Source of the DNA: Macrostomum lignano | Lineage: Eukaryota | DNA length: 64,000 nt | Reading direction: 5' to 3' | NCBI GenBank assembly: GCA_002269645.1 | Contig: NIVC01000555.1 | Location: forward strand, 183,938 to 247,937 | Shown here: piece by piece, positions 3,136 through 30,411 of the stretch | Position numbering within the stretch: position 1 is the first letter of the stretch | Layout of the letters: each line of letters opens with the position of its first letter | Made by a program: the position numbers and the translations under genes | The notes under the pieces: model-generated | Databases searched by the model: none | The model's input: only the letters and a program-made list of their open reading frames with translations | Told to the model about the DNA's origin: nothing

Positions 3136-3939
3136 ATGGCCCTCAACGCGCAACAGACTCATGAGCCGTGGCAAAAGTTGGCGATAAAAGTGGCCGATAA
3201 AATCTGCAAGAAATCCGATAGTTTGCGTCAAGATCTCGCCAGACTGAAGACTGAGGTCGCCAGCAAAAACTGGCCCCATGACGTCTTCAGAAATCCGTCC
3301 GATGCTGAGAACCGCTTTCGTCAGCTTGAGAGCTCCATTGGCGAGTTGTACAGCGCCGCCAGCGCCATGCACCAGACCAACCAGTCGCTGCTGAACACCT
3401 GCGAGGAGTTTATCGCTCTGCAAAGCCACGAAGCGTCGTCAAACCTTGAAAGGTCCTCCAAGGCTGCCGAGGCTGCTAAAAAGAAGCTGACGGAGATTCA
3501 AACATGCGATGAAAAGAGCATCGAAGCTGGCAGGAAATTTCAGACTGATTCTGGCCGACTGACTGAGGCTTTCACGAAGGCAAAGAACTTCTGCGATGAT
3601 GAAGCAGAGTTTATTAAATCTGAAGCTGATTTTCTAGCTTCTCAGGATGTAAGACAACCTCGAGAAAATGGTGCACGACTGCAGGCTTTGCGATCCAACG
3701 AAACTCTGCTTAACAAGTCGATTGAAACTTTGAAGACTATTATTGAACTGCTGCAGAAGCTCAAGGCTCAATCTGGTGAAGTCATTGAGGAAGCTGATAA
3801 GCTCAGCCAGTTTGTAAAAGATACCATGGCCAATATCGACACTGCGATTGGACGGGAATCTCGAGTTGCTGACACTTTAGACACGAAAGAGAAGGAAATA
3901 CAGCGACTCCAAGAGCTGCTGCGCAAAGCTTCGAAGTAA
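3136..3939 (+). CDS. Orphan helical/coiled-coil protein A, copy A1 (267 aa)
   Basis: Intact intronless ORF directly after a splice acceptor; 4 copies in the window; no signal peptide or hydrophobic segment. Confidence 0.85.
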   Translation: MALNAQQTHEPWQKLAIKVADKICKKSDSLRQDLARLKTEVASKNWPHDVFRNPSDAENRFRQLESSIGELYSAASAMHQTNQSLLNTCEEFIALQSHEASSNLERSSKAAEAAKKKLTEIQTCDEKSIEAGRKFQTDSGRLTEAFTKAKNFCDDEAEFIKSEADFLASQDVRQPRENGARLQALRSNETLLNKSIETLKTIIELLQKLKAQSGEVIEEADKLSQFVKDTMANIDTAIGRESRVADTLDTKEKEIQRLQELLRKASK

Positions 3940-4723
3940 ATTAATTACTACTACAGTGCTACTGCACTTCTTTACTTCGAATTTCAAGATAAACCGAAAA
4001 CTTTTAGCTAAAAAACCTTATATGACATCGCCCTACTATCTTATAATACGACACGATTTAATTGTCAAATATCGAATCCCGTTTTGTCATTAAATATTTG
4101 GTTTCTTTCACCCTGCTGTGTCGTCGAATCTCATTCTCCGTTTAGCTTTACCTTGCTCGTACTGAAATATGACGCGATGCCACAGTATCAAACCAAGGAC
4201 CACTGAAGTCACTTCGTTAAACTTAAGTAGTCCTTGTATCAAACACCTATAAAATGAATTTTTCCTCAATAAGTGGAGCGAGTTTATATCGTAAACCCAA
4301 GCTTAACCCAATCAAATTACAAGTACATGTAACATGCAATAAAGCGCGGTGACAAGAAGTCAGAAGAGATCTTATTGTAATTAAAAAATTCCTTGTTTTA
4401 TTTTCCGTGAAGGCTTATCATTCTTGTATGCTGGTGGCTGCACCAATGTTTTAAAATCAAATAACGACGAAGACACATGCTCATTTTTTTCGTTCGATAA
4501 ATGTGCTAAGCTGACGGCTCAGTGTAGGCGAACATGCAGAGCTTTCAAATGAAAAAATAAAATTCTCCTGTAAATTTTTGGAGCTATAAAAACCGAATAT
4601 ATGGGTCAAGAAAATAAATTCAAAAACGATAAGCAACTAGATAAATGTACTTAAATCAACTTTAAGCATTACTGTACTCAATAGAACAATACTGTATTTT
4701 AATGCATCTCGGAAGAGATCCAA

Positions 4724-4776
4724 GAAAAATCCGTGGAAAACCAGTGAAATTTCCGCGGTATTTCCATGGCATTACC
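4724..4776 (+). promoter_or_regulatory. Array of five kappaB/Rel-like motifs at 11-bp spacing upstream of truncated B
   Basis: GAAAAATCC, GGAAAACC, GAAATTTCC, GGTATTTCC and GGCATTACC start at 4724, 4735, 4746, 4757 and 4768. A TATA-like TATATAA is near 4809; a 5'UTR intron GTAAGT near 4915 runs to TTGCAG near 5026. Confidence 0.55.
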
Positions 4777-5035
4777 TTAGTTCCACGTTCCCGCATCAAT
4801 AAATTGAATATATAAGTCTAATGATTTTGGCTGCATAGCACAGACTCTAGCATCATTCACAGCTGTATTTACAAACTCTGCTTTAGGTTCTCAAGTCTTC
4901 GAAATATAACTCAGTAAGTGTTGATATCTAAATGATCTGACTGCTTTGTTTCAGACTTATATTACTATGAAATCGTTTTGATCATGCTGTTATAAATGTT
5001 CTCTTAATGTAAATTTACTATTGCAGTTTTGAGGA

Positions 5036-5371
5036 ATGGCCCAAGGAGAAAATGATTCCTCGTACAACGCTATCCTCGAGTGGCTAAATCCAGCCACCAG
5101 AAATGCTCAATGGATAGCTTCAAATTCAATCCAATTCGCTAATGAACTAAGTGATACCGCATCAAGGGCAAGAAATGAGCTGCTTTCTCTCCCAGATTGC
5201 CCCTGCGAGGTAGACTGTTTTAGAAAGAGGTTTTTCGGCTCGATGGATGATGCTAAATCATCTGGAAATGAGCTGAAAAGAAGATGCGATGAGCTCTGTA
5301 GAGAATGGAACGACTTTCGAAACGATTTCGACAAATCAAGTAAAGAGAAAAAACAATTTAGCTCAATTTAG
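5036..5371 (+). pseudogene. 3'-truncated copy of gene B (111 aa)
   Basis: Homologous to the N-terminus of 12002-12883; breaks at KKQFSS at the duplication junction, before the hydrophobic hairpin. Confidence 0.9.
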
Positions 5372-5424
5372 TTGATAAGTATGTACTCATGTACTAAAAA
5401 ACAATTCATTGTTTTATTTCCAGA

Positions 5425-6228
5425 ATGGCCCTCAACGCGCAACAGACTCATGAGCCGTGGCAAAAGTTGGCGATAAAAGTGGCCGATAAAATCTGCAAGA
5501 AATCCGATAGTTTGCGTCAAGATCTCGCCAGACTGAAGACTGAGGTCGCCAGCAAAAACTGGCCCCATGACGTCTTCAGAAATCCGTCCGATGCTGAGAA
5601 CCGCTTTCGTCAGCTTGAGAGCTCCATTGGCGAGTTGTACAGCGCCGCCAGCGCCATGCACCAGACCAACCAGTCGCTGCTGAACACCTGCGAGGAGTTT
5701 ATCGCTCTGCAAAGCCACGAAGCGTCGTCAAACCTTGAAAGGTCCTCCAAGGCTGCCGAGGCTGCTAAAAAGAAGCTGACGGAGATTCAAACATGCGATG
5801 AAAAGAGCATCGAAGCTGGCAGGAAATTTCAGACTGATTCTGGCCGACTGACTGAGGCTTTCACGAAGGCAAAGAACTTCTGCGATGATGAAGCAGAGTT
5901 TATTAAATCTGAAGCTGATTTTCTAGCTTCTCAGGATGTAAGACAACCTCGAGAAAATGGTGCACGACTGCAGGCTTTGCGATCCAACGAAACTCTGCTT
6001 AACAAGTCGATTGAAACTTTGAAGACTATTATTGAACTGCTGCAGAAGCTCAAGGCTCAATCTGGTGAAGTCATTGAGGAAGCTGATAAGCTCAGCCAGT
6101 TTGTAAAAGATACCATGGCCAATATCGACACTGCGATTGGACGGGAATCTCGAGTTGCTGACACTTTAGACACGAAAGAGAAGGAAATACAGCGACTCCA
6201 AGAGCTGCTGCGCAAAGCTTCGAAGTAA
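5425..6228 (+). CDS. Protein A, copy A2 (protein identical to A1)
   Basis: Same 267-aa translation as A1; its own promoter and GTAAGT donor were removed by the junction at 5372. Confidence 0.8.
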   Translation: MALNAQQTHEPWQKLAIKVADKICKKSDSLRQDLARLKTEVASKNWPHDVFRNPSDAENRFRQLESSIGELYSAASAMHQTNQSLLNTCEEFIALQSHEASSNLERSSKAAEAAKKKLTEIQTCDEKSIEAGRKFQTDSGRLTEAFTKAKNFCDDEAEFIKSEADFLASQDVRQPRENGARLQALRSNETLLNKSIETLKTIIELLQKLKAQSGEVIEEADKLSQFVKDTMANIDTAIGRESRVADTLDTKEKEIQRLQELLRKASK

Positions 6229-7012
6229 ATTAATTACTACTACAGTGCTACTGCACTTCTTTACTTCGAATTTCAAGATAAACCGAAAACTTTTAGCTAA
6301 AAAACCTTATATGACATCGCCCTACTATCTTATAATACGACACGATTTAATTGTCAAATATCGAATCCCGTTTTGTCATTAAATATTTGGTTTCTTTCAC
6401 CCTGCTGTGTCGTCGAATCTCATTCTCCGTTTAGCTTTACCTTGCTCGTACTGAAATATGACGCGATGCCACAGTATCAAACCAAGGACCACTGAAGTCA
6501 CTTCGTTAAACTTAAGTAGTCCTTGTATCAAACACCTATAAAATGAATTTTTCCTCAATAAGTGGAGCGAGTTTATATCGTAAACCCAAGCTTAACCCAA
6601 TCAAATTACAAGTACATGTAACATGCAATAAAGCGCGGTGACAAGAAGTCAGAAGAGATCTTATTGTAATTAAAAAATTCCTTGTTTTATTTTCCGTGAA
6701 GGCTTATCATTCTTGTATGCTGGTGGCTGCACCAATGTTTTAAAATCAAATAACGACGAAGACACATGCTCATTTTTTTCGTTCGATAAATGTGCTAAGC
6801 TGACGGCTCAGTGTAGGCGAACATGCAGAGCTTTCAAATGAAAAAATAAAATTCTCCTGTAAATTTTTGGAGCTATAAAAACCGAATATATGGGTCAAGA
6901 AAATAAATTCAAAAACGATAAGCAACTAGATAAATGTACTTAAATCAACTTTAAGCATTACTGTACTCAATAGAACAATACTGTATTTTAATGCATCTCG
7001 GAAGAGATCCAA

Positions 7013-7065
7013 GAAAAATCCGTGGAAAACCAGTGAAATTTCCGCGGTATTTCCATGGCATTACC
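7013..7065 (+). promoter_or_regulatory. kappaB/Rel-like motif array (second tandem copy)
   Basis: Identical to 4724-4776. Confidence 0.55.
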
Positions 7066-7324
7066 TTAGTTCCACGTTCCCGCATCAATAAATTGAATAT
7101 ATAAGTCTAATGATTTTGGCTGCATAGCACAGACTCTAGCATCATTCACAGCTGTATTTACAAACTCTGCTTTAGGTTCTCAAGTCTTCGAAATATAACT
7201 CAGTAAGTGTTGATATCTAAATGATCTGACTGCTTTGTTTCAGACTTATATTACTATGAAATCGTTTTGATCATGCTGTTATAAATGTTCTCTTAATGTA
7301 AATTTACTATTGCAGTTTTGAGGA

Positions 7325-7660
7325 ATGGCCCAAGGAGAAAATGATTCCTCGTACAACGCTATCCTCGAGTGGCTAAATCCAGCCACCAGAAATGCTCAAT
7401 GGATAGCTTCAAATTCAATCCAATTCGCTAATGAACTAAGTGATACCGCATCAAGGGCAAGAAATGAGCTGCTTTCTCTCCCAGATTGCCCCTGCGAGGT
7501 AGACTGTTTTAGAAAGAGGTTTTTCGGCTCGATGGATGATGCTAAATCATCTGGAAATGAGCTGAAAAGAAGATGCGATGAGCTCTGTAGAGAATGGAAC
7601 GACTTTCGAAACGATTTCGACAAATCAAGTAAAGAGAAAAAACAATTTAGCTCAATTTAG
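7325..7660 (+). pseudogene. 3'-truncated copy of gene B (second tandem copy)
   Basis: Identical to 5036-5371. Confidence 0.9.
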
Positions 7661-7713
7661 TTGATAAGTATGTACTCATGTACTAAAAAACAATTCATTG
7701 TTTTATTTCCAGA

Positions 7714-8517
7714 ATGGCCCTCAACGCGCAACAGACTCATGAGCCGTGGCAAAAGTCGGCGATAAAAATGGCCGATAAAATCTGCAAGAAATCCGATAGT
7801 TTGCGTCAAGATCTCGCCAGACTGAAGACTGAGGTCGCCAGCAAAAACTGGCCCCATGACGTCTTCAGAAATCCGTCCGATGCTGAGAACCGCTTTCGTC
7901 AGCTTGAGAGCTCCATTGGCGAGTTGTACAGCGCCGCCAGCGCCATGCACCAGACCAACCAGTCGCTGCTGAACACCTGCGAGGAGTTTATCGCTCTGCA
8001 AAGCCACGAAGCGTCGTCAAACCTTGAAAGGTCCTCCAAGGCTGCCGAGGCTGCTAAAAAGAAGCTGACGGAGATTCAAACATGCGATGAAAAGAGCATC
8101 GAAGCTGGCAGGAAATTTCAGACTGATTCTGGCCGACTGACTGAGGCTTTCACGAAGGCAAAGAACTTCTGCGATGATGAAGCAGAGTTTATTAAATCTG
8201 AAGCTGATTTTCTAGCTTCTCAGGATGTAAGACAACCTCGAGAAAATGGTGCACGACTGCAGGCTTTGCGATCCAACGAAACTCTGCTTAACAAGTCGAT
8301 TGAAACTTTGAAGACTATGATTGAACTCCTGCAGAAGCTCAAGGCTCAATCTGGTGAAGTCATTGAGGAAGCTGATAAGCTCAGCCAGTTTGTAAAAGAT
8401 ATCATGACCAATATCGACACTGCGATTGGACGGGAATCTCGAGTTGCTGACACTTTAGACGCAAAAGAGAAGGAAATACAGCGGCTCCAAGAACTGCTGC
8501 GCAAAGCTTCGAAGTAA
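7714..8517 (+). CDS. Protein A, copy A3 (267 aa)
   Basis: Intact ORF; ends carry A4-type residues, middle is A1-type. Confidence 0.85.
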   Translation: MALNAQQTHEPWQKSAIKMADKICKKSDSLRQDLARLKTEVASKNWPHDVFRNPSDAENRFRQLESSIGELYSAASAMHQTNQSLLNTCEEFIALQSHEASSNLERSSKAAEAAKKKLTEIQTCDEKSIEAGRKFQTDSGRLTEAFTKAKNFCDDEAEFIKSEADFLASQDVRQPRENGARLQALRSNETLLNKSIETLKTMIELLQKLKAQSGEVIEEADKLSQFVKDIMTNIDTAIGRESRVADTLDAKEKEIQRLQELLRKASK

Positions 8518-9238
8518 ATTAATTACTACTACAGTGCTACTGCACTTCTTTACTTCGAATTTCAAGATAAACCGAAAACTTTTAGCTAAAAAACTTAAAT
8601 GGTATCGCACTACAATCTTACAATACGACACTATTTAATTGTCAAACATCGAATCCCGTTTTTTCACCCTGCTTTGTCGTCGAATCTTATTTTCGACTGA
8701 ATATATGACTTAATGCCACAGTATCAAACAGTACAAAATTATTTTTTCTTCAGTAAATTAAGATTCATATCATTAATCCCAGCTCGAAATTATAGGAACG
8801 TGTAGCTATTCGGAATTGAGCGCGATGACAAGAAGAGATCATCTTGCGTTTTGAAATTTCTTTTTTTATTTTCCCGGAAGGCTTATCTACCCTGTATGCT
8901 GGTGGTTGCACCAACGTTTTAAAAGCAGTAGCAACAAAGACACATTTTCCTTTTTATCGTTCGATCAAGGCGTTAAGCGGACGGCTCAGTGTAAAACATG
9001 CAGAACTTTCTGCTTTGAAAAAATTCATTGTACATATACTTTCCTTCAGACGCAATGAAGTTTAATTTAGGCCATTATTCCACACTTTTGGAACTTTCCA
9101 TAGACAAAAGAGTCAATCAGTATATTTTAACCAATAAGCAACGGATGCAAATACGAGAACTCGTATAACTGAAAAGATATCAGGGCCTCACGGCTAGTAG
9201 TCTATGGCCAAAACTGTGTCAAACAAGAAAAACATGTA

Positions 9239-9462
9239 CACCTTTTCACGTTCAATTTTGATCAAAGTCCAGTTCTACAAAAACTAGCGGAAATTCAATT
9301 CAGACAATTCAGACTTGGGCAACAAACCCCCGTTCAAAACATTATGCAACCGAAGCAAGTTTTAGCCATAGACAAAATTGTCCCCAGTCTGAATCGTCTG
9401 AATTGAATTTCTGCTAGTTTTTTTAGAACTGGAGTTTGTTCAAAATTGAACGTGAAAAGGTG
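9239..9462. mobile_element. MITE with about 80-bp TIRs and TA target duplication (Tc1/mariner-like)
   Basis: CACCTTTTCACGTTCAATTTTG... (9239-9319) is the reverse complement of ...CAAAATTGAACGTGAAAAGGTG (9383-9462); TA on both sides. Confidence 0.8.
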
Positions 9463-9741
9463 TAAAAGCTGCATTCATCCATGCATTAAATAAACATGAA
9501 CACAAAACCAGAACAGGAGCAATTAAATGTCACTGTCTATCAACGTTACTGCAGATGTCAAAGACGCCTATTAATTACCCCCAAAATTAAATGTACAGTT
9601 TTCAAAGCGGCAATTTTCGAAAATTCGAGACACATGTGCCTGGGTGTTCATCACTGAAATAATTTAAAGCGAAACTGTTTTTACACCAAAGGAACATTTG
9701 TTCACCAACAAACATTTTCTGATAAATAGACATTCATTTAG

Positions 9742-11100
9742 TTACTCAAACTTACCACTTGAAACTTGCACTTCATTAGCCGGCTTGACTTCGACAGGTG
9801 AGATACCGTCGACACCTGTCTCAATGCGCGGCATGTTTACGCCGTTCGATTGCTTGGGCACCTCGATAGGACGATCTAAGGCCGCGCTTACAGCCGTCGA
9901 CGCTTCAAAAACTGCGCGGTCGCGCTTCCTTGATAGATATCGGCGCACCGTTTTTTCGCTCTTCTGACGGGCGAAGCACATGATATCATTCATTCCATGG
10001 CCAGTCTCGTGCAAGTCCGCGATTCGCGTCACCCGTATACAATGATTTGTATACTTTCGAGATAGATTGCATTGCTTGCTAAGCCGTTTCATCAATGAGG
10101 TGAACCAATTGATACCTCGTACCTGCTGAGATGAAAAACGCAAACAACCCATTGTCTTGTCATTCGGTAGTGCTCTTGGGAGCAAGCAGTCGTCCTTGCG
10201 ATCCGATGGGAGCAGCGAAATGTATTTATTGACCAGGTCCCGCTGCTTCCGATACAGCCTAGCTTGCTTCGGGCGGTCGTCCTTACAACGCGTAGGATCG
10301 GAATTTTGATTCTTTGTAGGCAGTATTGGAAGCGACATATAGGGTCTGCCATCAGCATCCACCTTCGTCAACAGACTGCTTGCTGCCTTCAGTGCCGGCA
10401 TGTGCTCTTGCCCACGCTCTCCAAAAACGTACATAATGAACAATACCTCATCCTGCAACTTCTCAGCGGTACTTCCGTCGAAATATGCTCGCAACTTTGT
10501 TAGATCAGCTTCCTCGATAGCTTCAAATTGCTTGGTAACGCCTCCAGCATTGTGGAATTCCCTCACCTTCACTCTTAGCATGCGATTGGAGCTCGAAAAC
10601 TCTTCTCCGTCAATGAAGTTGATAGAGCGCTTCAGAATTAGGTTAAAGTACCGGTGTATCCCAGCTCTAATGCACACAAGACTTGACGGCGAATACTTTT
10701 CACCGTTCGTCCTCTGCAGACCGAAATAATAATAGCGCAAGTACTCATTCAGCTTCCACACTTCCATCGTCACAGGCGACTCCTCGGTTGTCTCAGAGAG
10801 AAACTTCACGAAAGCCTGCCCATGCCGATTCATCTGGTCCACCGTTGACTTTGGCAGTGACTGAATTTCTACACCATCCATTCTCGAACTCAGGTCCATG
10901 TCGTCGCCCGCCACCTCCGGAAGTTCAGGCAGTTCTTCAGTGCCATGATCGTTCTCAAGCCACTTAATGAAATCACTCAGGGCCTGGTCATCGTGATTTT
11001 CTCCATGCATGCTTATCTCCGACAAAAGTTGCAGCTCGTCCATCTTGACACCATTGAGCGAGTCGACCGGAAGATTTTTCCAATTGATAAGCGCAGGCAT
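9742..11100 (-). CDS. DUF3504 / Crypton tyrosine recombinase (452 aa)
   Basis: YSPSSLVCIRAGIHRY core-binding helix; FGERGQE (R), TKN (K), YTNHCIR (HxxR), ARQKS (GHKS position) and RRY (catalytic Y). Confidence 0.88.
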   Translation of the reverse strand: MPALINWKNLPVDSLNGVKMDELQLLSEISMHGENHDDQALSDFIKWLENDHGTEELPELPEVAGDDMDLSSRMDGVEIQSLPKSTVDQMNRHGQAFVKFLSETTEESPVTMEVWKLNEYLRYYYFGLQRTNGEKYSPSSLVCIRAGIHRYFNLILKRSINFIDGEEFSSSNRMLRVKVREFHNAGGVTKQFEAIEEADLTKLRAYFDGSTAEKLQDEVLFIMYVFGERGQEHMPALKAASSLLTKVDADGRPYMSLPILPTKNQNSDPTRCKDDRPKQARLYRKQRDLVNKYISLLPSDRKDDCLLPRALPNDKTMGCLRFSSQQVRGINWFTSLMKRLSKQCNLSRKYTNHCIRVTRIADLHETGHGMNDIMCFARQKSEKTVRRYLSRKRDRAVFEASTAVSAALDRPIEVPKQSNGVNMPRIETGVDGISPVEVKPANEVQVSSGKFE

Positions 11101-11676
11101 TTTGAAGCTACAAAAACGCGTCCCTTAATATGTCAAGAGTGATAAGAAATGGACATCAATATTGCAAGTTTTCTGTCTATGGTCCAAGTAACCTCTGCAG
11201 ACAACATAGCGAGCAACGTTTAGTCTATGGTCAAGAGAAAAGTGTGGAATAATGACCGCGAAAAAAGTGTAGAATAATGGCCGCAAAAGTGTGGAATAAT
11301 GACTGCGCGCTGAGTGAAAGTATAAATACAATGTATAAATAATGACGCACTGGGACCGCTGATTCTTTGCATTGTTTTTCTGTTTGACGATCCTACAGAC
11401 AATGCATTGTTTGTAGTAATGGATTGTTCTGCATTAAAAATGTGAATAATGATCGTCAAATTGCTAAACAATGCACTTGTGTAGTATGCAACTGAGTTGA
11501 ATAATGGCCAAAACACGAGTGCGCGTAACATAATAACTGAAATATTTTGGTCAAATAAACTAAATTCAGAAACGATAAAAACTAGATAACTATACGTAAA
11601 TCCACAATAAAATCGCAAACATCACTGTACTAAATAGAACTATACTGTACTTTACTGCCTCTCGGAAGGCATCCGA

Positions 11677-11729
11677 GAAAAATCCGGGGGAAACCAGTGA
11701 AATTTCCGCGGTATTTCCATGGCATTACC
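11677..11729 (+). promoter_or_regulatory. kappaB/Rel-like motif array upstream of intact gene B2
   Basis: GAAAAATCC-GGGGGAAACC-GAAATTTCC-GGTATTTCC-GGCATTACC; TATATAAAA near 11759. Confidence 0.6.
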
Positions 11730-12001
11730 TTAGTTCCATGTTCGCGCGTCAATCTGAATATATAAAAATCTAATAATGACTTCGGTTGCAGAGACTCTAG
11801 CATCATTCACAGCTTTATTTACACACCTTACTTCAGGTTTTCAAGTCTTCGAAATATAACTAATGTAAGTCTAAGTGTTTATATCTAAATGATCTGACTG
11901 CTTTGTTTCAGTATTTATTTGATTTTGCTATGAATTTTTTTATCAAGAACTTACAAATATTTTTGTAAACTTTTCGTAATTTTCTATTGCAGTTTTGAGA
12001 A

Positions 12002-12883
12002 ATGGCTGAAGGAGAAAATGGATACTCGTACGACGCTATCGTTGATTGGCTAAATCCAACCACCCAAAATGCAAGGTTGATAGCTTCAGATGCAAGCGAA
12101 TTCGCTTGTAAACTACGTAGTACGGAAAGAAGCGCAAGAAATGAGCTGCTTGGTCTTCCAGATTGCCCTTATAGGGTAGACTTTCTCGACTCGATGGACA
12201 ATGCAAAATCTTCTGGAGATGAGCTGAAAAGAAGATGCGAAGAGCTCTGTAGAGAATGGAACGACTTTTCTCAAAAATTCGAAACATCAAGTAAGGAGAA
12301 AAAACAATTTAGCTCCGCCGAATTGGACAAGCTGTTGGAAGATATGAATAAACTTTTGAAAATGTGTGCCGCTTGCGGACAACAATATTCTGAGACTCAA
12401 GAGAAATTAAACACAGCCATCAATGACTGCTCCCACTTAGTTGATGAGCTAGCGAAGGAAGCGGACCGCAAGAGAAAAGAGGAATCCGACAGAAAACTTA
12501 TGGGCTACGGTGCAGCAGTCGTTGGCTTTGGTGCAGCTGTGGCGACTGCTGGCGCGACTGCTCCAGCGATGTTTGCCTCTGGAAGCCTGACAACGGCCTC
12601 CGTAGGCACCGCTGCTTGGACTAAGGTTACGTCCGATGCTCTTGGTAGTCTCTCTGACAAGTTTAGCAAAGCTCGCAGAAACATGAACGAGACGCTTCGG
12701 CGTCTGAATGAACTGTCTAACTTGATTGCTAAACTTGAGAGATCGACTAAAGAAATGGCGAGAAATATCGAAATCGGAAGGGGCAGAGAGCGGAGAGTGA
12801 GAGATACGATACGTAGTAAGGAACAGGAAATCGAGAAACTGAAAGAGCAACTCCGAAAAGCTGGAATTTCGATGGATGATTGA
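12002..12883 (+). CDS. Orphan helical protein B, intact copy B2 (293 aa) with central hydrophobic hairpin
   Basis: Helical N-part, 42 uncharged residues (LMGYGAAVVGFGAAVATAGATAPAMFASGSLTTASVGTAAWT, 12497-12622), then a C-terminal coiled coil; no signal peptide. Confidence 0.85.
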   Translation: MAEGENGYSYDAIVDWLNPTTQNARLIASDASEFACKLRSTERSARNELLGLPDCPYRVDFLDSMDNAKSSGDELKRRCEELCREWNDFSQKFETSSKEKKQFSSAELDKLLEDMNKLLKMCAACGQQYSETQEKLNTAINDCSHLVDELAKEADRKRKEESDRKLMGYGAAVVGFGAAVATAGATAPAMFASGSLTTASVGTAAWTKVTSDALGSLSDKFSKARRNMNETLRRLNELSNLIAKLERSTKEMARNIEIGRGRERRVRDTIRSKEQEIEKLKEQLRKAGISMDD

Positions 12884-20767: not shown

Positions 20768-20820
20768 GAAAAATCCGGGGAAAACCAGTGAAATTTCCGC
20801 GGTATTTCCATGGCATTACC
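20768..20820 (+). promoter_or_regulatory. kappaB/Rel-like motif array upstream of B3
   Basis: Includes GGGGAAAACC (20777-20786), a Dorsal/Rel-type consensus, plus the invariant ATTTCCGCGGTATTTCCATGGCATTACC block. Confidence 0.6.
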
Positions 20821-21103
20821 TTAGTTCCATATTCGCGCGTCAATCTAAATGTATAAAAATCTACGATTAATAATGTACGTATAATAGTGATTTCGGTTGC
20901 AGAGACTCTAGCATCATTCACAGCTTTATTTACATACCTTGCTTCAGGTGCTTAAGTCTTCGAAATATACCTCAGTGAGTGTTTATATCGAAATGATCTG
21001 ACTGCTTTGTTTCAGTACTCGTATTTGTTTTTCCTATGAAATTGTTTTATCATGCACTTAGAAACGTTTTCCTAATGTAAATTTACTATTGCAGTTTTGA
21101 GGA

Positions 21104-22016
21104 ATGGCCCAAGGAAAGAATGATTGTTCGTACAACGGTATCCACGAGTGGCTAAATCCAGCCACCAAAAATGCAAGGTTGATAGCTTCAGATTCAAGCA
21201 AATTCGCTTGTGAACTGCGTAGTACGGAAAGAAGCGCAAAAAAGGAGCTGCTCTCTCTCTCATACTGCAGCCCTTACAGCGTGGACTTTAGTAGACAGAG
21301 GTTTCTCAACTCGATGGACGGTGCGAAATCTTCTGGAGATGAGCTGAAAAGTAAATGCGATGCGCTCTGTAAAGAATGGAAAAAAATTTGCCAATGATTA
21401 CGCTAAATCAAGCAAAGGGAAAAAAGAATCCGCCGAATTGGACAAGCTGTTGGAAGATGTGGATAAACTTTCGGAAAAATGTGCCGCTTGCAGACAGCAA
21501 TATTCTGTGACTCAAGAGAAATTAAACACCGCCATCAATGACTGCTCCCTCTTTGTTAAAGAGCTAGCGAGGGAAGCGGACCGCAAGAGAAAAGAGAAAT
21601 CTGCCAGAAAACGTAAAGGCAACTTTGCAGCTCTCGTTAGCTTTGGTGCAGCTGTGCTTGGTAGGCTCTCTGACAAGTTTAGAAAAGATCGCGGAAGCAT
21701 GAAAACGATGCGTCGGTGCCTGATGCAACTGTCTAACTTGATTGCTAGCCTTGAGAGATCGACTAAAGACATGACGAGAAGCATCGAAAACGGAAGAAGG
21801 GAGAGAGTTAAAGATACGACACGTAGTAAGGAGCAGGAAAATAAGAAACTGAAAGATACGATACGTAGTAAGGAGCAGGAAAATGAGAAACTGAAAGATA
21901 CGATACGTAGTCAGGAGCAGGAAAATGAGAAACTGAAAGATACGATACGTAGTAAGGAGCAGGAAAATGAGAAACTGAAAGAGCAACTCCGAAATGCTGG
22001 AATTTCAGATGACTGA
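21104..22016 (+). pseudogene. Gene B copy B3: +1 frameshift in an A7 run, in-frame hairpin deletion, 4x 42-bp C-terminal repeat
   Basis: ORFs 21104-21397 and 21360-22016 join if one A is removed from 21380-21386. GAAV is joined directly to LGRLSDKF. KDTIRSKEQENEKL-type repeat x4 at 21810-21977. Confidence 0.8.
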
Positions 22017-23583
22017 TCAAATTTTCACACCAAAAACTGACTAAAGCCTGCGAATTGGCTCTGCACACTATTGACTAATAGATTGCGAATACAGTTAACA
22101 TTTTCTACTACCCTTTATGCATGGAAAAAGTGATCTTTTTAGCTACGAGTGTTTGAATAATTTTTGTAATTGGTATTGTATTTGTTCTAATTACGCGATA
22201 GTTGGCTGTATCAACTGCATATACCTGTACTACTGCCTACAATGTTTGCAATATTCAAGCTATCAGTAAGTGAAGTAGCTGGCCAGCTGCGGATAATGCA
22301 ACATAATTTAAATTTCAGTATCGATTAGTTTTCTTCTGGTGACTTTTGAACTGCAATTTACTCCCTATCAATATCCCTATATTTACTCCCTTAGAATATT
22401 GTGCTAGCAATTTAGCTTCACTTACTTTGGGGGACTGTACCATATCGCCTTGGGGAACAGTCTCGTCTCAGCTGGAAAACTACGTGTACTATACCTATAC
22501 CATTAATTATCCAATGCGATCCCGCAGTTGGTATCGTAGAAGCAGTGTTTTATTGCAGTCTTTGTCCGTTCATCGTGTACTCTTTAGTTTCGTTATTTTT
22601 GGCAAATGCATTGCCGCTTCATTTTATTGTCTATGTCCCAACCTGGCGTATCTCTGTAAGCCTAGAACCATAAGAATTCTGGTTGCCTTTAGTTGCACAA
22701 TACAAGCTGCTGCACGGCCTTGCCTGATCAAGGCTAAAGCGTTTTCTTATTCTTTCAAAAGTGCAGTCAGTTCATGACACTATTTTTCTATATTTCCTTG
22801 ATAGACAGGCATGTTTACTCATTAGTCAGAGTAAACAGGTAGAAATTTTAGGCCGGCTCCTTTACTCAAGGATTTGCTGATCAAGTGCTACTCACGCTAG
22901 ACAATGTAAATTACATCCTTGAGCAGTGATGATCTCCTAAGTAGCAGGTATGAGGGGGATTTTCGGAAATTGTTTCCACTTCCTCTATAATGCCAATAGT
23001 TTTGCATTTAGTATTCCAAAAAGAAATAAAAATGGGAGTCGACTTTGTTAAAAAAAAACGTTCCCCCATAATCCCATTAATTCTATCTGTACTATCCCCA
23101 AAGAATCGCATTGTTCAAACTTCATTCGATTGTCTGCCCAAAGCCAGATCCCAACAGCTTTCAACCACCAGTACGCCAGGCTGTCGCCAGGTTTAGGCTC
23201 AGCGGAGACGGAGAGGATGAGTTTTGGGAGAGAGTACGCAGAGAGAAGCTTGCCCGGAAGTAGAAACAGACAGAATTGAACAGCGAAGGCTATTCCTAAA
23301 GTAAGGCAATTGTACTCTCCACCTTTCTACCTGCTGAGCCAGCAGAGGCTGTATCGATTTCTCTGACTTAGCATCCCCTCAGCAGCGGTCGCAGTCCCCA
23401 ACGCTTGCGTCCATTTTTAAGCGTTGGGAATTTCTCTTTTACGCTTGCGAGCCATTGAGCTAGCATCTCACAAAGGCGCTTCTGTTGATTGGGTTAACAA
23501 GTTGAAGCCGAACCAGATATTGCAAGAACCAGATACTGCAGTATGCAATATTGCATTGAAGCTGTCATGACAAGTATTGTGCC

Positions 23584-24368
23584 TTTCTGTCTACTTATAG
23601 TAAAGCAACATCAAAATGCTCCTATTTTATGATTTCAATGCTGCAAGTATCCGATAATACAGTATTCGTTTTTGTGCAGAGAAGCTCTCATGACAACTAC
23701 TATACGTTTTTGTCTACTTATAGTAAGGCGATGTTAAAATGCTCCTATTTTATGATTACAATGCTGCAAGTATCCGATAATACAGTATTCGTTTTTGTGC
23801 AGAGAAGCTCTCATGACAACTACTATACGTTTTTGTCTACTTATAGTAAGGCGATGTTAAAATGCTCCTATTTTATGATTACAATGCTGCAAGTATCCGA
23901 TAATACAGTATTCGTTTTTGTGCAGAGAAGCTATCGTGACAACTACTATACGTTTTTGTCTACTTATAGTAAGGCGATGTTAAAATGCTCCTATTTTATG
24001 ATTACAATGCTGCAAGTATCCGATAATACAGTATTCGTTTTTGTGCAGAGAAGCTCTCATGACAACTACTATACGTTTTTGTCTACTTATAGTAAGGCGA
24101 TGTTAAAATGCTCCTATTTTATGATTACAATGCTGCAAGTATCCGATAATACAGTATTCGTTTTTGTGCAGAGAAGCTCTCATGACAACTACTATACGTT
24201 TTTGTCTACTTATAGTAAGGCGATGTTAAAATGCTCCTATTTTATGATTACAATGCTGCAAGTATCCGATAATACAGTATTCGTTTTTGTGCAGAGAAGC
24301 TATCGTGACAACTACTATACGTTTTTGTCTACTTATAGTAAGGCGATGTTAAAGTGCTCCTATTTTAT
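23584..24368. repeat. 123-bp tandem repeat, about 6 copies
   Basis: Near-identical units; source of the 41-aa periodic ORF 23629-24435. Confidence 0.95.
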
Positions 24369-25333
24369 GCCAGATTCTTTGCCAACTTTAATATCACATT
24401 CTCTCAATGACTCAAACTGCAGAGAAATCTCATGAATTTCTTTACTACTCAAGACAACTCTCTCTTCACTTCAATTGGGTTTCTCTACCAACATCTGACC
24501 ACCATCAGCAGAGATGGTATGTCTGTTCTTCTCCCTCAAGACCAAGTCGAGACTCAAATAGCTGCGAATTAAAATATTCAAGCCTCTAACAATATCAGCT
24601 GTATTTGGCGCTAAAAACCAACCCTCTTTGTAAAATTTTACCTCAAAAGCCAACTCCCTGTACCATATTGGGTTTTACAATGGATAGAGATAACGTTATC
24701 GTAAAAGTATAAGTATCGATAAGGATACTGTGTCGTTTCAAAACCCTATCTCTGCATCCTTATGAATTTGTAAGGATCACTCTGATCGCAGTCAGATTAT
24801 AAGTTATGAACAGTTTTTTGTCTGGTTAACTCTGTGTCAAAAATTTTTCTTTTGGTAAAATAACATTTTCAAAGAAGTAGTTATAAGCATCCACAGTCTG
24901 CATTACCTAAATAGCTCCAGAACGAGTTGGCAGCAGTCTAAACAGCCGATGCAGAAGTAGCTCAGACAGGAGCAGCCTCCGACCGTAGCAGCAATTCAGC
25001 TGCAAGTTGGTACTGCTGGGTCGGCCAGCTCAAACTGCGACTGCTCCTCCAGCTGCACTGGCGGTGCGTTAAGATCGCACTTTTACGACATGCTGGATGG
25101 CTAACACTTTCGGGCTTGTAGGTCCTTAGATTTTCGTTGGCGTTCGATTTTGTACGATCGCTATCGATCTGCACTGAATATCCTTGTCGCTGTTGCAGTC
25201 TCTGTGCAGGGAAATCTATTTCTACTGTATGTGTGCACAGTAAGTCTCTTCCAAGTCTTGCTCATTTCCATACTAAGAGCCAGTAAGTGCTACTGCAATC
25301 AGCCTTTTATCAGGCTAGTTCAAACTCACGCTG

Positions 25334-25365
<32 letters not shown>

Positions 25366-25380
25366 GACAGACAGACAAAC

Positions 25381-25479
<99 letters not shown>

Positions 25480-25502
25480 AAGACAGACAGACAGACAGAA
25501 AG

Positions 25503-25597
<95 letters not shown>

Positions 25598-25665
25598 CAC
25601 AGACAGACACACAGACAGACTGACACGCAGACAGACGGACAGACAGACAGACGGACAGACAGATG

Positions 25666-25717
<52 letters not shown>

Positions 25718-25766
25718 CACACACAGACAGACACACAGACAGACAGACACGCAGACAGACACGCAG

Positions 25767-25808
<42 letters not shown>
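25334..25808. repeat. (ACAG)n microsatellite
   Basis: Paralog of 701-1229 with the same flanks. Confidence 0.97.
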
Positions 25809-27468
25809 GACACCATACAAATATACAAACGACACTTAAGTAGTCTCTGAGAGTGTACTTCAGTGTATTGTTGTGTAGAGTACTATAGTTGCGCAGTAAT
25901 GTTTAGTACAATGGTCTGTATAAGCAATAATTGGAAATAAAAGTACGCGGTGATTGTTCAATATTAAATAGACTAGATTGAATCAGTCAGGGCTTGAAAA
26001 GGTTGGCAATATCCAGGCCACACTCAAGACACGCCAAGCAGATGTGGATGCAGCAGCAGACGTTTTCCAGAGTCTCCATCTTGCTCGTCTCTGATTTTGT
26101 GTCCTCCACTGAAGTTGCAATGATTTTCTCCCGATCTGACGAGCCTGCAGGCTGATCCAGCGTTGCGTCATGAGGTGATTCGAAGACCGCCTTGTTCATG
26201 TCTTTCGAGTTTTTCATTTCAGTAGCTTTGCAGCGTCTCTTGGCAGCGAATGCCATTTATAGACTCTTCCCAATCGTCAGTTTAAATGTATTCACAACGC
26301 GAAGTTGCCTCACTTTGCCAGTACAGCAAGCCAGGTCGTGTACATACATGTAGTAGAGCTTATCACTAGGCATTATAGATAAGTTTTGTGACTTTTTTTT
26401 GGCGTACGTTGGTGACACTTCGGCTAAAAATACTTTGAATGAGCCAAGCCATTTATTTCGGCCATGATAATAAACATACTTTTAAAAAAGCAACTTTTTT
26501 GCTGAAAGCAAAATTTGCACTCTCGTTCATGCATGCTGAAATGATATGCCGTACGGAGCGCATGATATGCAGTGTGATGCAGCTCTCCCTAATATACGAG
26601 CGTATAGTAGTGTTGTAATTAGAATGTCGTGAATGTCTGTTCTTGGAGATTTAACGCTTTCCTTAGATATTTGACACTGTTCTTGTGTTCTTGGAGATTT
26701 GACACTGTTCTTGTAGATGTGACCTCCTTGGAGATTTGACGCTACTGCCACTGTCAGAAGTTACCGCTTTGGGCTTTTGACATTTTCAAATGTTGAGACG
26801 ACAACAGACCAGCAGCTATCTAGGAGTTTAACAGTAATTCCCTCGCCGCTAAGTAAAGAGCCCTAACTTTGACACAGAAGGCTACTCTGCCCAGAATATT
26901 AGTCTCGTAAACGCCACTTTAACTCGGGTTCCTTTTGGCACACCATGCGGCTGCTTGAAGCAAACTGTTCCAAGCAAACCAGCAGCTGGAGCATGGCTAG
27001 CTTCTCCCTGCGCGTGACGGGACTCTCAGTAATTAATCACTGTTTTCATTGCTTTGAAAACATATTGAGAATTCATTTTGAAACGACTGTTCTGAAATAT
27101 CAGTAATGTATATGGAATCAGTCATGCAAACTTTTAATAATTTACGAGGTACGCTACAGCTTTTTAGCTGAAGAAAGGTAACGTAAAACGTCACTAGCTA
27201 CTTACATGAGTAGAACGTGCTGATGCATGCTGATTCATATCACTTAAAAAAATAAAAGCGGTGGTTGTACTTAAAATTCCAAATTAATGTACATTTTCAA
27301 TTGTTTCCCTCAATCTTCATTAATTTTCCTTAAGTGAAATTACTCTAAGCAATGTTAAACAAGCTAGGTTTTGAGACTAAAGAATATTATTAATCAGAAA
27401 AGCATGGAATCAGTTTGTTGTCAGCTACGATAGTAAGGCCCTGGCCCTGATTCGCTAGAGCCTGAAAA

Positions 27469-27488
27469 GGTTTTTCCGCGGAATTTCC
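27469..27488 (+). promoter_or_regulatory. Paired kappaB/Rel-like motifs upstream of A4
   Basis: GGTTTTTCC-GC-GGAATTTCC, identical to 2915-2934. Confidence 0.5.
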
Positions 27489-27689
27489 TTTTGAACGCAG
27501 TTTAAACATCTGGCTGCAGGAAAAGCTGCTATTTCTTCCCGCGGGCAGAACTCAGTCCAGCTTCTCAAACCCTAAATTTCAGTCTATAGAAACCTTTAGG
27601 TAAGTTTAGATGATGAAGTACCCTACCTACCTTCTTTTGATAAGTATGTACTCATGTACTAAAAAAAAATTCATTGTTTTATTTCCAGA

Positions 27690-28496
27690 ATGGCCCTCAA
27701 CGCGCAACAGACTCATGAGCCGTGGCAAAAGTCGGCGATAAAAATGGCCGATAAAATCTGCAAGAAATCCGATAGTTTGCGTCAAGATCTCGCCAGACTG
27801 AAGACTGAGGTCGCCAGCAAAAACTGGCCCCATGACGTCTTCAGAAATCCGTCCGATGCTGAGAACCGCTTTCGTCAGCTTGAGAGCTCCATTGGCGAGT
27901 TGTGCAGCTCCGCCAGCGCCATGCACCAGTCCAACCAGTCGCTGCTGAACACCTGCGAGGAGTTTATCGCTCTGCAAAGCCACGAAGCGTCGTCAAACCT
28001 TGAAAGGTCCTCCAAGGCTGCCGAGGCTGCTAAAAAGAAGCTGACGGAGATTGAAGCATGCGATGAAAAGAGCATCGAAGCTGGCAGGAAATTTCAGACT
28101 GATTCTAGCCGACTGACTGAGGCTTTCACGAAGGCGAAGAACTTCTGCGATGACGAGGCAGAGTTTATTAAATCTGAAGCTGATTTTCTAGCTTCTCAGG
28201 ATCTAAGACAACCTTCTCGAGAAGATGATGCGAGACTACAAGCTTTGCGATCCAACGAAACTCTGCTTAACAAGTCGATTGAAACTTTGAAGACTATGAT
28301 TGAACTCCTGCAGAAGCTCAAGGCTCAATCTGGTGAAGTCATTGAGGAAGCTGATAAGCTCAGCCAGTTTGTAAAAGATATCATGACCAATATCGACACT
28401 GCGATTGGACGTGAATCTCGAGTTGCTGACACTTTAGACGCAAAAGAGAAGGAAATACAGCGGCTCCAAGAACTGCTGCGCAAAGCTTCGAAGTAA
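27690..28496 (+). CDS. Protein A, copy A4 (268 aa)
   Basis: Intact ORF with one extra codon (QPSREDD); own upstream region and 5'UTR intron retained. Confidence 0.85.
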   Translation: MALNAQQTHEPWQKSAIKMADKICKKSDSLRQDLARLKTEVASKNWPHDVFRNPSDAENRFRQLESSIGELCSSASAMHQSNQSLLNTCEEFIALQSHEASSNLERSSKAAEAAKKKLTEIEACDEKSIEAGRKFQTDSSRLTEAFTKAKNFCDDEAEFIKSEADFLASQDLRQPSREDDARLQALRSNETLLNKSIETLKTMIELLQKLKAQSGEVIEEADKLSQFVKDIMTNIDTAIGRESRVADTLDAKEKEIQRLQELLRKASK

Positions 28497-29159
28497 ATTA
28501 TTTACTGCAGTGCTACTGTACTTTCTACTTCGAATTTCAAGAAGATAAACCTAACATTTTAGCTACAAAACTTAAAGGGACATCGCACTACTATCTTATA
28601 ATACGACTCTATTTAATTTTAGAATATCGAAACCCGTTTTGTCGTTAAATAGTTCACGTTTCTTTCAACCTGTTAAGTCGTCGAATATACATGTACGAGC
28701 TATAACGCAATGCCGCAGTATCAAACACTACAAAATGAATTTTTCTCAATAAATGGAGCGAGTTAATGTCATTAACCCAAACTCCAAATTCTATGTGCAT
28801 GTAATATGCAATGACAAGAAGAGATCATATTTGGGATTTGAGAATTTCTTGGCTTATATTTTCCGTTAAGGAAATCTTCTCTGTATACTGGTTGCACCAA
28901 CGTTTTAAAATCAATAGCGATGAAGACACATACTCATTTTTCTCGTTCGATCAAGAAGCTGACGGCTCAGTGTAGAACATGTAGAGCTTTTAAATTGAAA
29001 AAGAAATTGCTTCCTTTGGAGATATTCTGAAGCAATTTTGAAAATAGTTAGGTCTAGTGTACTAAATTCAGAAGCGATAAACAACTAGATAAATATACTT
29101 AAGTTCACTTTAAAGTCGTACATTAGCAATTCTAGAAAACTGTTGTTGAAAACAACCAA

Positions 29160-29212
29160 GAAAAATTCACGGAAAAGCTTTGGAATTTCCGCGGTATTTC
29201 CATGGCATTACC
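29160..29212 (+). promoter_or_regulatory. kappaB/Rel-like motif array upstream of B4
   Basis: Includes GGAATTTCC (29182-29190) and the invariant GGTATTTCC-ATGGCATTACC. Confidence 0.6.
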
Positions 29213-29511
29213 TTAGCTCCATGTTCCCGCGTTAATAAGATTATATATGCTCGTATAATTCTAATGCCTTCCGTTGCACAGACTCAAGTATTATTCACAG
29301 AATTATATACACACCTTGCTTCAGGTTCTCAAGTTTTCGAAATATAACTCAGTAAGTGTTCATATCTAAATGATCTGTCTGCTCTGTTTCAATACTTATA
29401 TTTAAACGATATTTAGTAGAGCATAATTAGTACTTATTACTATGAAATCGTTTTGATCATTTCTGTTCTAAACGTTCTCTTAATGTAAATTTACTATTGC
29501 AGTTTTGAGAA

Positions 29512-30411
29512 ATGGCCCAAGGAGAAAATGGATACTCGTACAACGCTATCCTTGAGTGGCTAAATCCAGCCACCCAAAATGCTCACTCAATAGCTTCAGA
29601 TGCAAACAGATTTGCTTGTGAACTACGTAGTACGGAAAGAAGCGCAAGAAATGAGCTGCTTGGTCTTCCAGATTGCCCTTATAGGGTAGACAGTAAGAGA
29701 AAGAACTTTCTCGACTCGATGGACGATGCGAAGTCTTCTGGAGATGAGCTGAAAAGAAGATGCGATGAGCTCTGTAGAGAGTGGAACGAATTTTATGATG
29801 TTTACGAGAAATCAAATAAAGAGAAAAAACAATTTAGCTCCGTCGAATTGGACAAGCTGTTGGAAGATATGAATAAACTTTTGAAAAAATGTGCCGCTTG
29901 CGGACAGCTATATTCTGAGACTCAAGAGAAATTAAACACCGCCATCAATGACTGCTCCCACTTAGTTGATGAGCTATCAAAGGAAGCGGACCGCAAGAGA
30001 AAAGAGGAATGCGACAGAAAACTAAAAGGCTACGGTGCAGCAGTCGTTGGCTTGGGTGCAGCTGTGGCGACTGCTGGCGTGGCTACTGCTCCAGCGATGT
30101 TTGCCGCTGGAAGCCTGACAACGGCCTCCGTAGGCACTGCTGCTTGGACCAAGGTTACGTCCGATGCTCTTGGTAGGCTCTCAGACAGGTTTAGCGAAGC
30201 TCGCGGAAGCATGAGCGCGACGCTTCGGCGTCTGAATGAGCTGTCTAACTTGATTGCTAGCCTTGAGAGATCGACTAAAGACATGGCGAAAAACATCGAT
30301 ATCGGAAGGAGCAGGGAGCAGAGAGTGAGAGATACGATAAACAGTAAGGATGAGCAAATCGAGAAACTGAAAGAGCAACTCCGAAAAGCTGGAATTTCGT
30401 TGAATGATTGA
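29512..30411 (+). CDS. Protein B, intact copy B4 (299 aa)
   Basis: Full ORF with a conserved hydrophobic hairpin (GYGAAVVGLGAAVATAGVATAPAMFAAGSLTTASVGTAAW). Confidence 0.85.
   Translation: MAQGENGYSYNAILEWLNPATQNAHSIASDANRFACELRSTERSARNELLGLPDCPYRVDSKRKNFLDSMDDAKSSGDELKRRCDELCREWNEFYDVYEKSNKEKKQFSSVELDKLLEDMNKLLKKCAACGQLYSETQEKLNTAINDCSHLVDELSKEADRKRKEECDRKLKGYGAAVVGLGAAVATAGVATAPAMFAAGSLTTASVGTAAWTKVTSDALGRLSDRFSEARGSMSATLRRLNELSNLIASLERSTKDMAKNIDIGRSREQRVRDTINSKDEQIEKLKEQLRKAGISLND

Follow-up and report, generated by a model that had tools for sequence, protein, structure and literature searches.

Two genes, here called A and B, recur in the same order on the same strand of a 64,000-nucleotide (nt) stretch of contig NIVC01000555.1 from the flatworm Macrostomum lignano (assembly GCA_002269645.1; positions 183938-247937 of the contig), which we refer to as the window. 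B encodes a protein of predicted long helices with an uncharged hairpin rich in small residues, and A encodes one that lacks this hairpin. Here, we assign B by its profile matches to an unannotated protein family found in several eukaryotic assemblies, and we report that hairpin-less paralogs adjoin hairpin-bearing genes at three unrelated loci of this family, which is the most informative new result of the study. A sequence-only reading of the window had proposed that A and B form a two-component pore-forming effector, or a toxin with its decoy. We find that this interpretation is partly supported, and that B represents an undescribed eukaryotic family with a toxin-like two-component layout.

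A family of hairpin-bearing helical proteins

A word-indexed search with B returned only relatives from M. lignano, all of them named “hypothetical protein”. A B profile, searched exhaustively with HMMER against 1.84 billion representatives, recovered ten proteins at an expectation value (E) of 1e-3 or below, namely the divergent paralog P0002 and nine distant relatives, with E ranging from 2e-15 to 8e-4 and with collinear coverage. The family has a common layout of about 290-350 amino acids (aa), with four predicted long helices, no hydrophobic N-terminus, a hairpin between helices 3 and 4 and a long C-terminal helix. The ten proteins found by HMMER also share a helix-3 motif around C-x2-C/E-x2-Y-x2-F. 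The hairpin is an uncharged, Gly/Ala-rich segment of about 40-60 residues in all members but one (P0006/P0013), where the corresponding region is amphipathic. B fits all the defining features of this four-helix and hairpin family. A does not, as it aligns by its last helix only. Because the HMMER relatives share both layout and motif and none of them is in Pfam (a scan of the family members gave no family match), B belongs to an unannotated eukaryotic family that extends over several eukaryotic assemblies. The ENA/SRA samples behind the relatives are ERZ25072196, ERZ25072384, ERZ23496457, SRR29844784 and SRR17504024.

Several features of single members can be added. P0004 and P0005 end in CVCSVL and CVCAIL, respectively, and the M. 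lignano genes have no such ending; these CaaX-like CSVL and CAIL ends suggest that the two relatives may be anchored to membranes from the cytosolic side. P0005 itself is a chimeric gene model of 1171 aa, in which an aminolevulinate-synthase-like N-terminus is fused to the family domain. Finally, cysteines in helices 2 and 3 (C84, C130 and C148 in the B2 protein of the window) are conserved across much of the family despite the absence of a signal peptide; if they lie near each other in the bundle, they might form a redox lock, a metal site or an acylation site.

Hairpin-less paralogs beside hairpin-bearing genes

The pairing of a hairpin-less with a hairpin-bearing gene, proposed earlier from the window, recurs at three unrelated loci of the family (the loci outside the window are labelled L001 to L008). 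At L003, a 272-aa paralog without the hydrophobic hairpin lies 362 nt upstream of a 345-aa hairpin gene on the same strand, and the same pair is found again at 99.2% identity on an independent metagenome scaffold, L008. L004 carries four tandem paralogs, of which the third (256 aa, also truncated at its C-terminus) has a polar, charged sequence in the place of the hairpin and lies 739 nt upstream of a 315-aa hairpin gene. At L002, three of four paralogs have the hairpin and one does not.

The hairpin-less members are closest to their own neighbours, with identities of 42-50% at L004, 46% at L002 and 44% at L003, and none of them is closest to A or to another hairpin-less member. Since each is most similar to the genes beside it, the hairpin-less type has arisen repeatedly; constraint is shown for A only, and the other hairpin-less members could include decaying copies. 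Within M. lignano, the hairpin-less form arose twice, long ago in A and recently through the deletion carried by P0003, a B-type protein described below.

Two observations concern the surroundings of these genes. On L008, an ankyrin-repeat open reading frame (ORF) at 1237-2151 (+) lies 2.3 kb upstream of the 272/345-aa pair, which fits a eukaryotic host genome. Genes beside the family member at L005 were taken by eye as death-domain-like; Pfam gave no support and this candidate was rejected.

The A and B genes of the window

Copies were located from the ORF list and by tblastn of A and B against the window. Of A, four ORFs are intact (267-268 aa), and of B two (293 and 299 aa), with A upstream of B on the same strand. 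The earlier observation as a whole is confirmed and is far beyond chance. The A copies, all on the forward strand, are 94-100% identical to each other. A1 (3136-3939) encodes the 267-aa hairpin-less, four-helix protein that was modelled; A2 (5425-6228) is 100% identical to it and A3 (7714-8517) 98%, and the two lie in the second and third units of a tandem duplication. A4 (27690-28496; 268 aa), the A gene of a second module, is 94% identical to A1 and differs from it by a one-codon in-frame insertion. B1 (12002-12883, +; 293 aa) and B2 (29512-30411, +; 299 aa) are 80% identical by tblastn and 84% by alignment. B2, which is P0001 in our protein set, is the sole member of the window annotated in the public assembly, at 213449-214348 of the 308,481-bp contig.

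The distance from the A stop codon to the B ATG is 1096, 1096 and 1015 nt in the uninterrupted pairs, in agreement with the same-strand recurrence at about 1.0-1.1 kb that had been described, and reaches 3484 nt between A3 and B1 because about 2.9 kb of inserted DNA separates them. The earlier count of four intact A and two intact B genes also stands. The three “hairpin-less B” copies of that count are not of one kind: two are stubs holding codons 1-111 of a B gene (5036-5371 and, identical to it, 7325-7660; both +), recognised from the ORF list, tblastn and repeats, and the third is a frameshifted deletion copy spread over two frames, hereafter the B3-type copy (21104-22007, also delimited as 21104-22016; +), defined by tblastn and by alignment with P0003 and with L001:3697-4665.

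The hairpin of B is an uncharged run of 41-42 residues, 69-71% of which are Gly, Ala, Ser or Thr, with a central T-A-P. In B1 it covers aa 166-207 (12497-12622, +; LMGYGAAVVGFGAAVATAGATAPAMFASGSLTTASVGTAAWT), a 42-residue run with a G/A/S/T fraction of 0.69 and a maximum 19-residue hydropathy (KD19) of 1.50. In B2 it covers aa 173-213 (30028-30150, +), a 41-residue run with a maximum KD19 of 1.68. A has nothing like it, its maximum 19-residue hydropathy being 0.3-0.4. Hydropathy and AlphaFold2 models thus confirm the Gly/Ala/Thr hairpin with a central proline in B and the short polar linker in A. The claim that neither protein has a signal peptide agrees with direct reading and with the hydropathy scan, by which neither N-terminus is hydrophobic.

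We also asked whether A and B behave as genes. Between the two modules, the A coding sequence has an identity of 96.3%, and the 617 nt of the A-B spacer that can be aligned have one of 76.5%. The ratio of nonsynonymous to synonymous substitution (dN/dS) is 0.27-0.34 for A with a synonymous excess at p = 0.003-0.007 (0.34 and p = 0.007 for A4 against A1), and a fifth intact A ORF is present at L006, a locus on the same contig. Because dN/dS is low, the coding sequence is more conserved than the spacer and the diverged copy A4 carries its insertion in frame, A is a constrained coding gene under purifying selection. Constraint on B is moderate, with a dN/dS of 0.41-0.48 against the divergent paralog P0002 (p < 1e-4), and the repeat-bearing lineage of the B3-type copy has a dN/dS of 1.1-1.35.

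A consensus GTAAGT lies some 90-160 nt upstream of both A and B, followed by a polypyrimidine-AG acceptor whose end is 1-11 nt from the ATG. In A1, the GTAAGT donor is at 3046 and the acceptor (...tttccag) ends one base before the ATG, and A4 also has an upstream donor. A2 and A3 keep the ...tttccag acceptor and have no upstream GTAAGT donor, and A2 also lacks the 5′ exon. These splice-like signals could be those of an intron in the 5′ untranslated region or a trans-splice acceptor. The M. lignano annotation is transcript-based, and about 7% of its transcriptional units are multi-gene precursors resolved by trans-splicing (PMC5730564).

Every A copy is also overlapped in its 5′ third by an antisense ORF of 116-118 aa (3073-3429, 5368-5718, 7657-8007 and 27627-27983; all -), which we treat as a by-product of the codon composition of A.

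Origin of the copies

Repeat analysis identified two complete tandem units of 2289 nt (3083-5371 and 5372-7660, +), each made of an A gene, the spacer and B codons 1-111. Units 1 and 2 are 100% identical, and a third unit starting at 7661 is 99% identical. The unit begins at 3083, within the short intron-like segment just upstream of the A ATG, and ends after B codon 111, where the junction creates a TAG codon (5372 corresponds to 3083). Since the tandem unit is exact, a single recent duplication, or else the assembly, accounts for both B stubs and for two of the four A copies.

On a larger scale, the upstream flank of the second module (24634-27684, +) is a copy of positions 1-3130 of the window at 95-100% identity, and the two A-B modules are therefore segmental duplicates offset by about 24.55 kb. 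The M. lignano assembly is that of a recently duplicated genome, with 180 Mb in blocks at least 95% identical (PMC5730564). The 300 nt that precede A1 (2831-3130) and A4 (27385-27684) are 100% identical, and the two coding sequences differ at 27 sites, a pattern that suggests gene conversion in patches, or else strong conservation of the promoter and 5′ exon.

A related module, L006, lies about 8-28 kb upstream on the same contig and holds an intact hairpin-deleted B (P0003), one A (97.8% identical) and a frameshifted B. P0003 and the B3-type copy of the window share a clean, in-frame deletion of 102 nt that takes out most of the hairpin, as shown by comparison with L001:3697-4665, a gene of their subtype on another contig that bears the hairpin. 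The B3-type copy further has four repeats of 42 nt, which encode KDTIRSKEQENEKL, and its frame is broken near 21388, where a homopolymer is longer by one A; P0003, the other hairpin-deleted form, is an intact annotated ORF.

The unequal copy number (four A, two B, three hairpin-less B) had been read as evidence that A is a decoy. This argument fails: the asymmetry results from the 2289-nt tandem duplication and from segmental copying of the deletion variant, and as a by-product of duplication it is uninformative on a decoy role.

The DNA between A3 and B1 that is absent from the paralogous L006 module (8667-11529, about 2.9 kb, found by blastn of the window against L006) bears an intact ORF of 452 aa on the minus strand (9742-11100). 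A weak match to a QRICH1 domain (E 0.037) was its only Pfam match, and no relative was found in the PDB. This segment looks like a mobile-element insertion. Altogether, the region is best explained as a segmentally duplicated array of two lineage-restricted M. lignano genes, each with a single coding exon.

Relationship of A to B

The 19 identities over 33 residues quoted earlier between A and B were confirmed. They belong to a C-terminal motif of about 45 residues (aa 222-266 of A, 3799-3933, +; counterpart in B1 at 12731-12865) in which BLASTP finds 22 identities over 45 residues (E 3e-9). The similarity has a z-score of 11, a score that none of 2000 shuffles reaches, and direct reading of the alignments shows it also with the tail of the divergent P0002. 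With hhalign, residues 188-264 of A align with residues 216-292 of B (E 4.7e-4, probability 33%), and no other part aligns. The description of A and B as distant paralogs therefore holds for their last 45 residues or so, and full-length paralogy by sequence is not supported, as the shuffle test and hhalign support the C-terminal helix only. The matching pentapeptides KSEAD (A, position 161) and AKEAD (B1, position 151) are present as reported, and they lie within helices 1-3, where similarity is not significant (z = 1.4).

AlphaFold2 predicts four long helices for A, at residues 11-43, 54-97, 103-169 and 175-266 (predicted local distance difference test, pLDDT, 75; predicted template-modelling score, pTM, 0.60), and the same for B, at residues 10-50, 57-102, 110-181 and, after the hairpin, 208-292 (pLDDT 77, pTM 0.66). 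The structural likeness of A and B that had been anticipated is thus found in the models, which have the same topology and nearly equal helix boundaries. Since similarity in sequence is confined to the C-terminal helix while the predicted topologies match, it is from predicted structure that we infer full-length paralogy.

Comparison with ClyA-class toxins

In the literature consulted, ClyA-class pore formers, which are alpha-helical and made of several components, are presented as bacterial toxins, encoded by adjacent genes on the same strand, with related components that have or lack a hydrophobic head (PMC6162564). Taking the defining features of the class from this review, we found that the elongated all-alpha bundle is present in the AlphaFold2 models of A and B, with four helices of 33-92 residues predicted from shallow alignments. 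The hairpin between two long helices is present in B, between helices 3 and 4, and not in A. Adjacent co-oriented genes are found in M. lignano and at L003/L008, L004 and L002, and L001 has B-type genes without A. AlphaFold2 and hydropathy accordingly uphold the earlier description of the layout of B, long helices with an uncharged Gly/Ala-rich hairpin, as ClyA-like. Like the members of the ClyA superfamily (YaxAB/XaxAB, AhlABC/SmhABC, Hbl, Nhe and MakABE), the proteins are of about 270-370 aa and are predicted to form an elongated bundle of long helices, in B with a hairpin between two of them, and A lacks a hairpin as do the soluble components of multi-part ClyA-class toxins. They differ from this superfamily by their eukaryotic host, by four predicted long helices instead of a five-helix tail, and by the fact that A and B share only one helix by sequence.

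In Foldseek searches against the PDB, among the top 50 matches for each protein, members of the ClyA superfamily make up 33 for A and 15 for B and are the best natural matches. They include ClyA, AhlB, AhlC, SmhB, YaxB, MakA/E and Hbl-B; ClyA ranks first for B, and AhlC reaches a template-modelling (TM) score of 0.55-0.65 for A. The matches to ClyA, AhlB/C, SmhB and YaxB lie at E 0.006-0.1 and are not significant.

Sequence profiles give weak hints of alpha-pore-forming toxins. The family profile run against the PDB has as its top match the Hbl lytic component L1 (7nmq, E 7.9e-6), whose hairpin aligns with that of the family. Like B, L1 has a long helix after a Gly/Ala/Thr-rich hairpin, which numbers some 50 residues and has a proline in its central turn. 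Of the 28.5 bits of this match, 22.4 come from the hairpin, with a bias of 12.6. Because the score depends on the hairpin, we demoted this match as evidence of homology: a broader profile adds influenza HA2 and a profile without the hairpin finds no toxin. Among many coiled-coil families, sub-threshold NCBIfam matches include XaxA in four of 16 members (best E 7e-5, 17 bits for B2 against a cut-off of 125 bits), and MakE and MakA in two of 16 (E 0.01-0.02). In Pfam, Bacillus_HBL matches the relative P0010 (E 0.008, below cut-off). Pfam and NCBIfam scans of A, B and their relatives gave no model at cut-off, only sub-threshold coiled-coil noise.

Membership of a known lytic family is not supported, given that no Pfam or NCBIfam cut-off and no Foldseek match at E ≤ 1e-3 was reached and that the Hbl L1 match is hairpin-dependent. 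It is reasonable to say that A and B work like ClyA-type toxins; their membership of this class is not established.

Proposed mechanism and alternatives

We tentatively propose that A and B form a two-component membrane-inserting system with a ClyA-class-like action, in which B would be a conditional inserter and A its soluble partner or brake; we hold this to be plausible, if short of probable. In this model, the hairpin of B, helical and rich in small residues, would insert into a bilayer, and the long helices of B would provide a soluble bundle and an oligomerisation scaffold. A would act as a soluble partner or as a regulator that restrains B, with which it may pair through the shared C-terminal helix. 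The two proteins could thus be analogous to the head-less and hydrophobic-head components of YaxAB/XaxAB, AhlABC/SmhABC and Hbl/Nhe. In favour of the proposal stand the constraint on A and B, their matching predicted topologies, the properties of the hairpin, the wider family of B, the recurrent pairing, the ClyA-superfamily fold matches and the weak profile hints. We infer membrane insertion, contact between A and B and any lytic outcome, and a lytic attack on membranes from the cytosol is a hypothesis; the result might be lysis of another cell, death of the producing cell or membrane remodelling only.

Several results weigh against this proposal. The AlphaFold2 models were built on alignments of only three to four close sequences, and pLDDT is below 50 in the hairpin (residues 175-212 of B2). 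No Foldseek match reached E ≤ 1e-3: the best toxin for A is at 0.0097 and that for B at 0.011. After normalisation to the query, TM-scores range from 0.33 to 0.55, and equally good scores are obtained by F-BAR domains, axonemal coiled coils and helical bundles designed de novo. With the broader family profile, the E of Hbl L1 worsens to 1.5e-4 and the next match is influenza HA2, a protein with a fusion peptide and a coiled coil, and the hairpin-free profile retrieves no toxin, only generic coiled coils. By shuffle test, helices 1-3 of A and B have no significant similarity, and A matches a profile of the N-terminal three helices of the family with a probability of 1.6%. An obligatory linkage of A and B is not supported, as the two B-type genes of L001, on a second M. 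lignano contig, lack an A within 10 kb. Moreover, A is unannotated and absent from the protein collection searched, which is why a word-indexed search with A returned no match, not even A itself; this collection holds M. lignano B-type proteins from NCBI, UniRef and nr only, not from read-archive assemblies, and the absence is uninformative on expression. No expression data for Mlig004740 and Mlig013860 were found in the literature and in three supplement sets. Finally, a strongly hydrophobic two-helix hairpin is also what is expected of a permanently membrane-anchored protein.

This last point leads to a first alternative, which we consider rather unlikely: B proteins would be resident membrane proteins, anchored by the hairpin with cytosolic arms, that tether, scaffold or bend membranes, A would be a soluble relative or adaptor, and nothing would be lytic. 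The relatives have uncharged hairpin runs of 24-60 residues (48-60 in the Gly/Ala-rich ones). With a maximum KD19 of 2.0-2.4, most of these hairpins equal ordinary transmembrane helices in hydrophobicity, which speaks for this alternative. The family lacks a hydrophobic N-terminus, and two relatives have CaaX-like ends typical of membrane-attached cytosolic proteins. The profiles match mostly generic coiled-coil or tethering families (EzrA, COG, SMC, IMD), and the toxin fold matches are not significant. The HR1-TM-HR2 layout of mitofusins and Mic10 are known types of small-residue-rich hydrophobic hairpin, and B resembles them by a hairpin flanked by long helices, by the lack of a signal peptide and by two ends predicted on the same side of the membrane. 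Unlike them, B has no GTPase or other known domain and no sequence match, and its family is not conserved but patchy, multi-copy and fast-evolving. Membrane scaffolds with a housekeeping role usually exist as one widely conserved copy, whereas the B family is patchy, arranged in tandem arrays, fast-evolving (dN/dS 0.4-1.35) and a repeated source of hairpin-less copies. Moreover, the M. lignano B hairpin is only marginally hydrophobic (1.5-1.7) and Thr/Ser-rich, which better suits a conditional inserter.

The layout of B, a hydrophobic hairpin followed by a C-terminal helix, also recalls Apolipoprotein L, a family of helical animal proteins that are mostly intracellular and have both a hydrophobic helical hairpin and a coiled coil at the C-terminus. 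ApoL (PF05461) is absent from the Pfam matches listed for A, B and 20 relatives, which for some of the proteins were the 25 best weak hits, a result that includes no profile-profile or structural comparison with ApoL.

A stronger form of our proposal is that A and B are an undescribed eukaryotic two-component, ClyA-like perforating family without signal peptide, in which the repeatedly evolved hairpin-less partner would be an obligatory co-assembling subunit or an inhibitor of a cell-killing or suicide effector. This we regard as doubtful.

It is less likely again that A and B are functionally unrelated neighbours that were duplicated together with whole segments of a recently polyploid, highly redundant genome. 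The 45 residues they share would then stem from an ancient partial duplication or reflect a common coiled-coil motif. All the A-B pairs of the window and of L006 belong to one family of segmental and tandem duplicates (76-100% DNA identity) and are therefore not independent observations. The duplicated state of the assembly (PMC5730564), the B-type genes without A at L001 and the lack of detectable similarity between A and the B family outside the last helix also speak for mere co-duplication. Against it stand the hairpin-less genes beside hairpin-bearing ones at three unrelated loci of distant family members, the closely matching predicted helix boundaries of A and B, and a C-terminal similarity that is strong (z = 11) and extends to the P0002 tail.

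Finally, a selfish element in which B would be a poison, A or the hairpin-deleted B3 type its antidote, and which would spread by killing progeny or gametes that do not carry it, is very improbable. In its favour, a putative membrane-damaging gene is tightly linked to a related hairpin-less gene, copy number varies, evolution is rapid (dN/dS ≥ 1 in the B3 lineage) and the hairpin-deleted P0003 is an intact annotated ORF. Against it, duplication accounts for the unequal copy numbers, and the presence of the family and of the pairing in several distant taxa is more in keeping with a conserved role in the cell or in immunity than with a young drive element. A and B do resemble peel-1/zeel-1 and wtf in the tight linkage of a putative membrane-active gene to its partner, in rapid evolution and in changes of copy number. 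In wtf, a single gene with alternative transcription starts yields both poison and antidote, two multi-pass proteins that are nearly identical. Unlike wtf, A and B are two separate ORFs, 1.0-1.1 kb apart, that share about 45 residues, and A has no hydrophobic segment.

Neighbouring features of the window

Two ORFs on the minus strand (44924-45331 and 46066-46479) match the C- and N-terminal halves of the Snf7 (ESCRT-III) domain with E of 1.5e-20 and 4.5e-15, and are probably two exons of a single gene of CHMP type. Other exon-like ORFs belong to ordinary host genes downstream of the array, one a C2H2 zinc-finger gene (40655-41098, +) and one a WD40-repeat gene (61166-61651 and 62479-63018, -). 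The B-type locus L001 also has a C2H2 zinc-finger gene downstream. Long simple or tandem repeats lie at 560-1270, 25290-25850, 23429-24466, 31490-32130, 36860-38490 and 52880-54020. Among them are a 123-nt unit in seven copies and a microsatellite of the (CAGA)n type that was copied when the modules were duplicated, and several others yield long spurious ORFs in all frames.

Meaning for the family and for M. lignano

Our literature searches found no report of a eukaryotic counterpart to the multi-component ClyA-class pore formers. If B does insert into membranes and needs A, or is checked by it, the pair would represent a new class of eukaryotic membrane-damaging effector and a natural case of a repeatedly evolved “disarmed” partner. 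It would also offer a testable two-gene system in M. lignano, a flatworm amenable to transgenesis and RNA interference. The argument that had been drawn from copy numbers in the window is corrected here. Even if the membrane reading proves false, the protein family of B and its relatives, hitherto unannotated, has been newly delimited and has a clear signature in its sequence.

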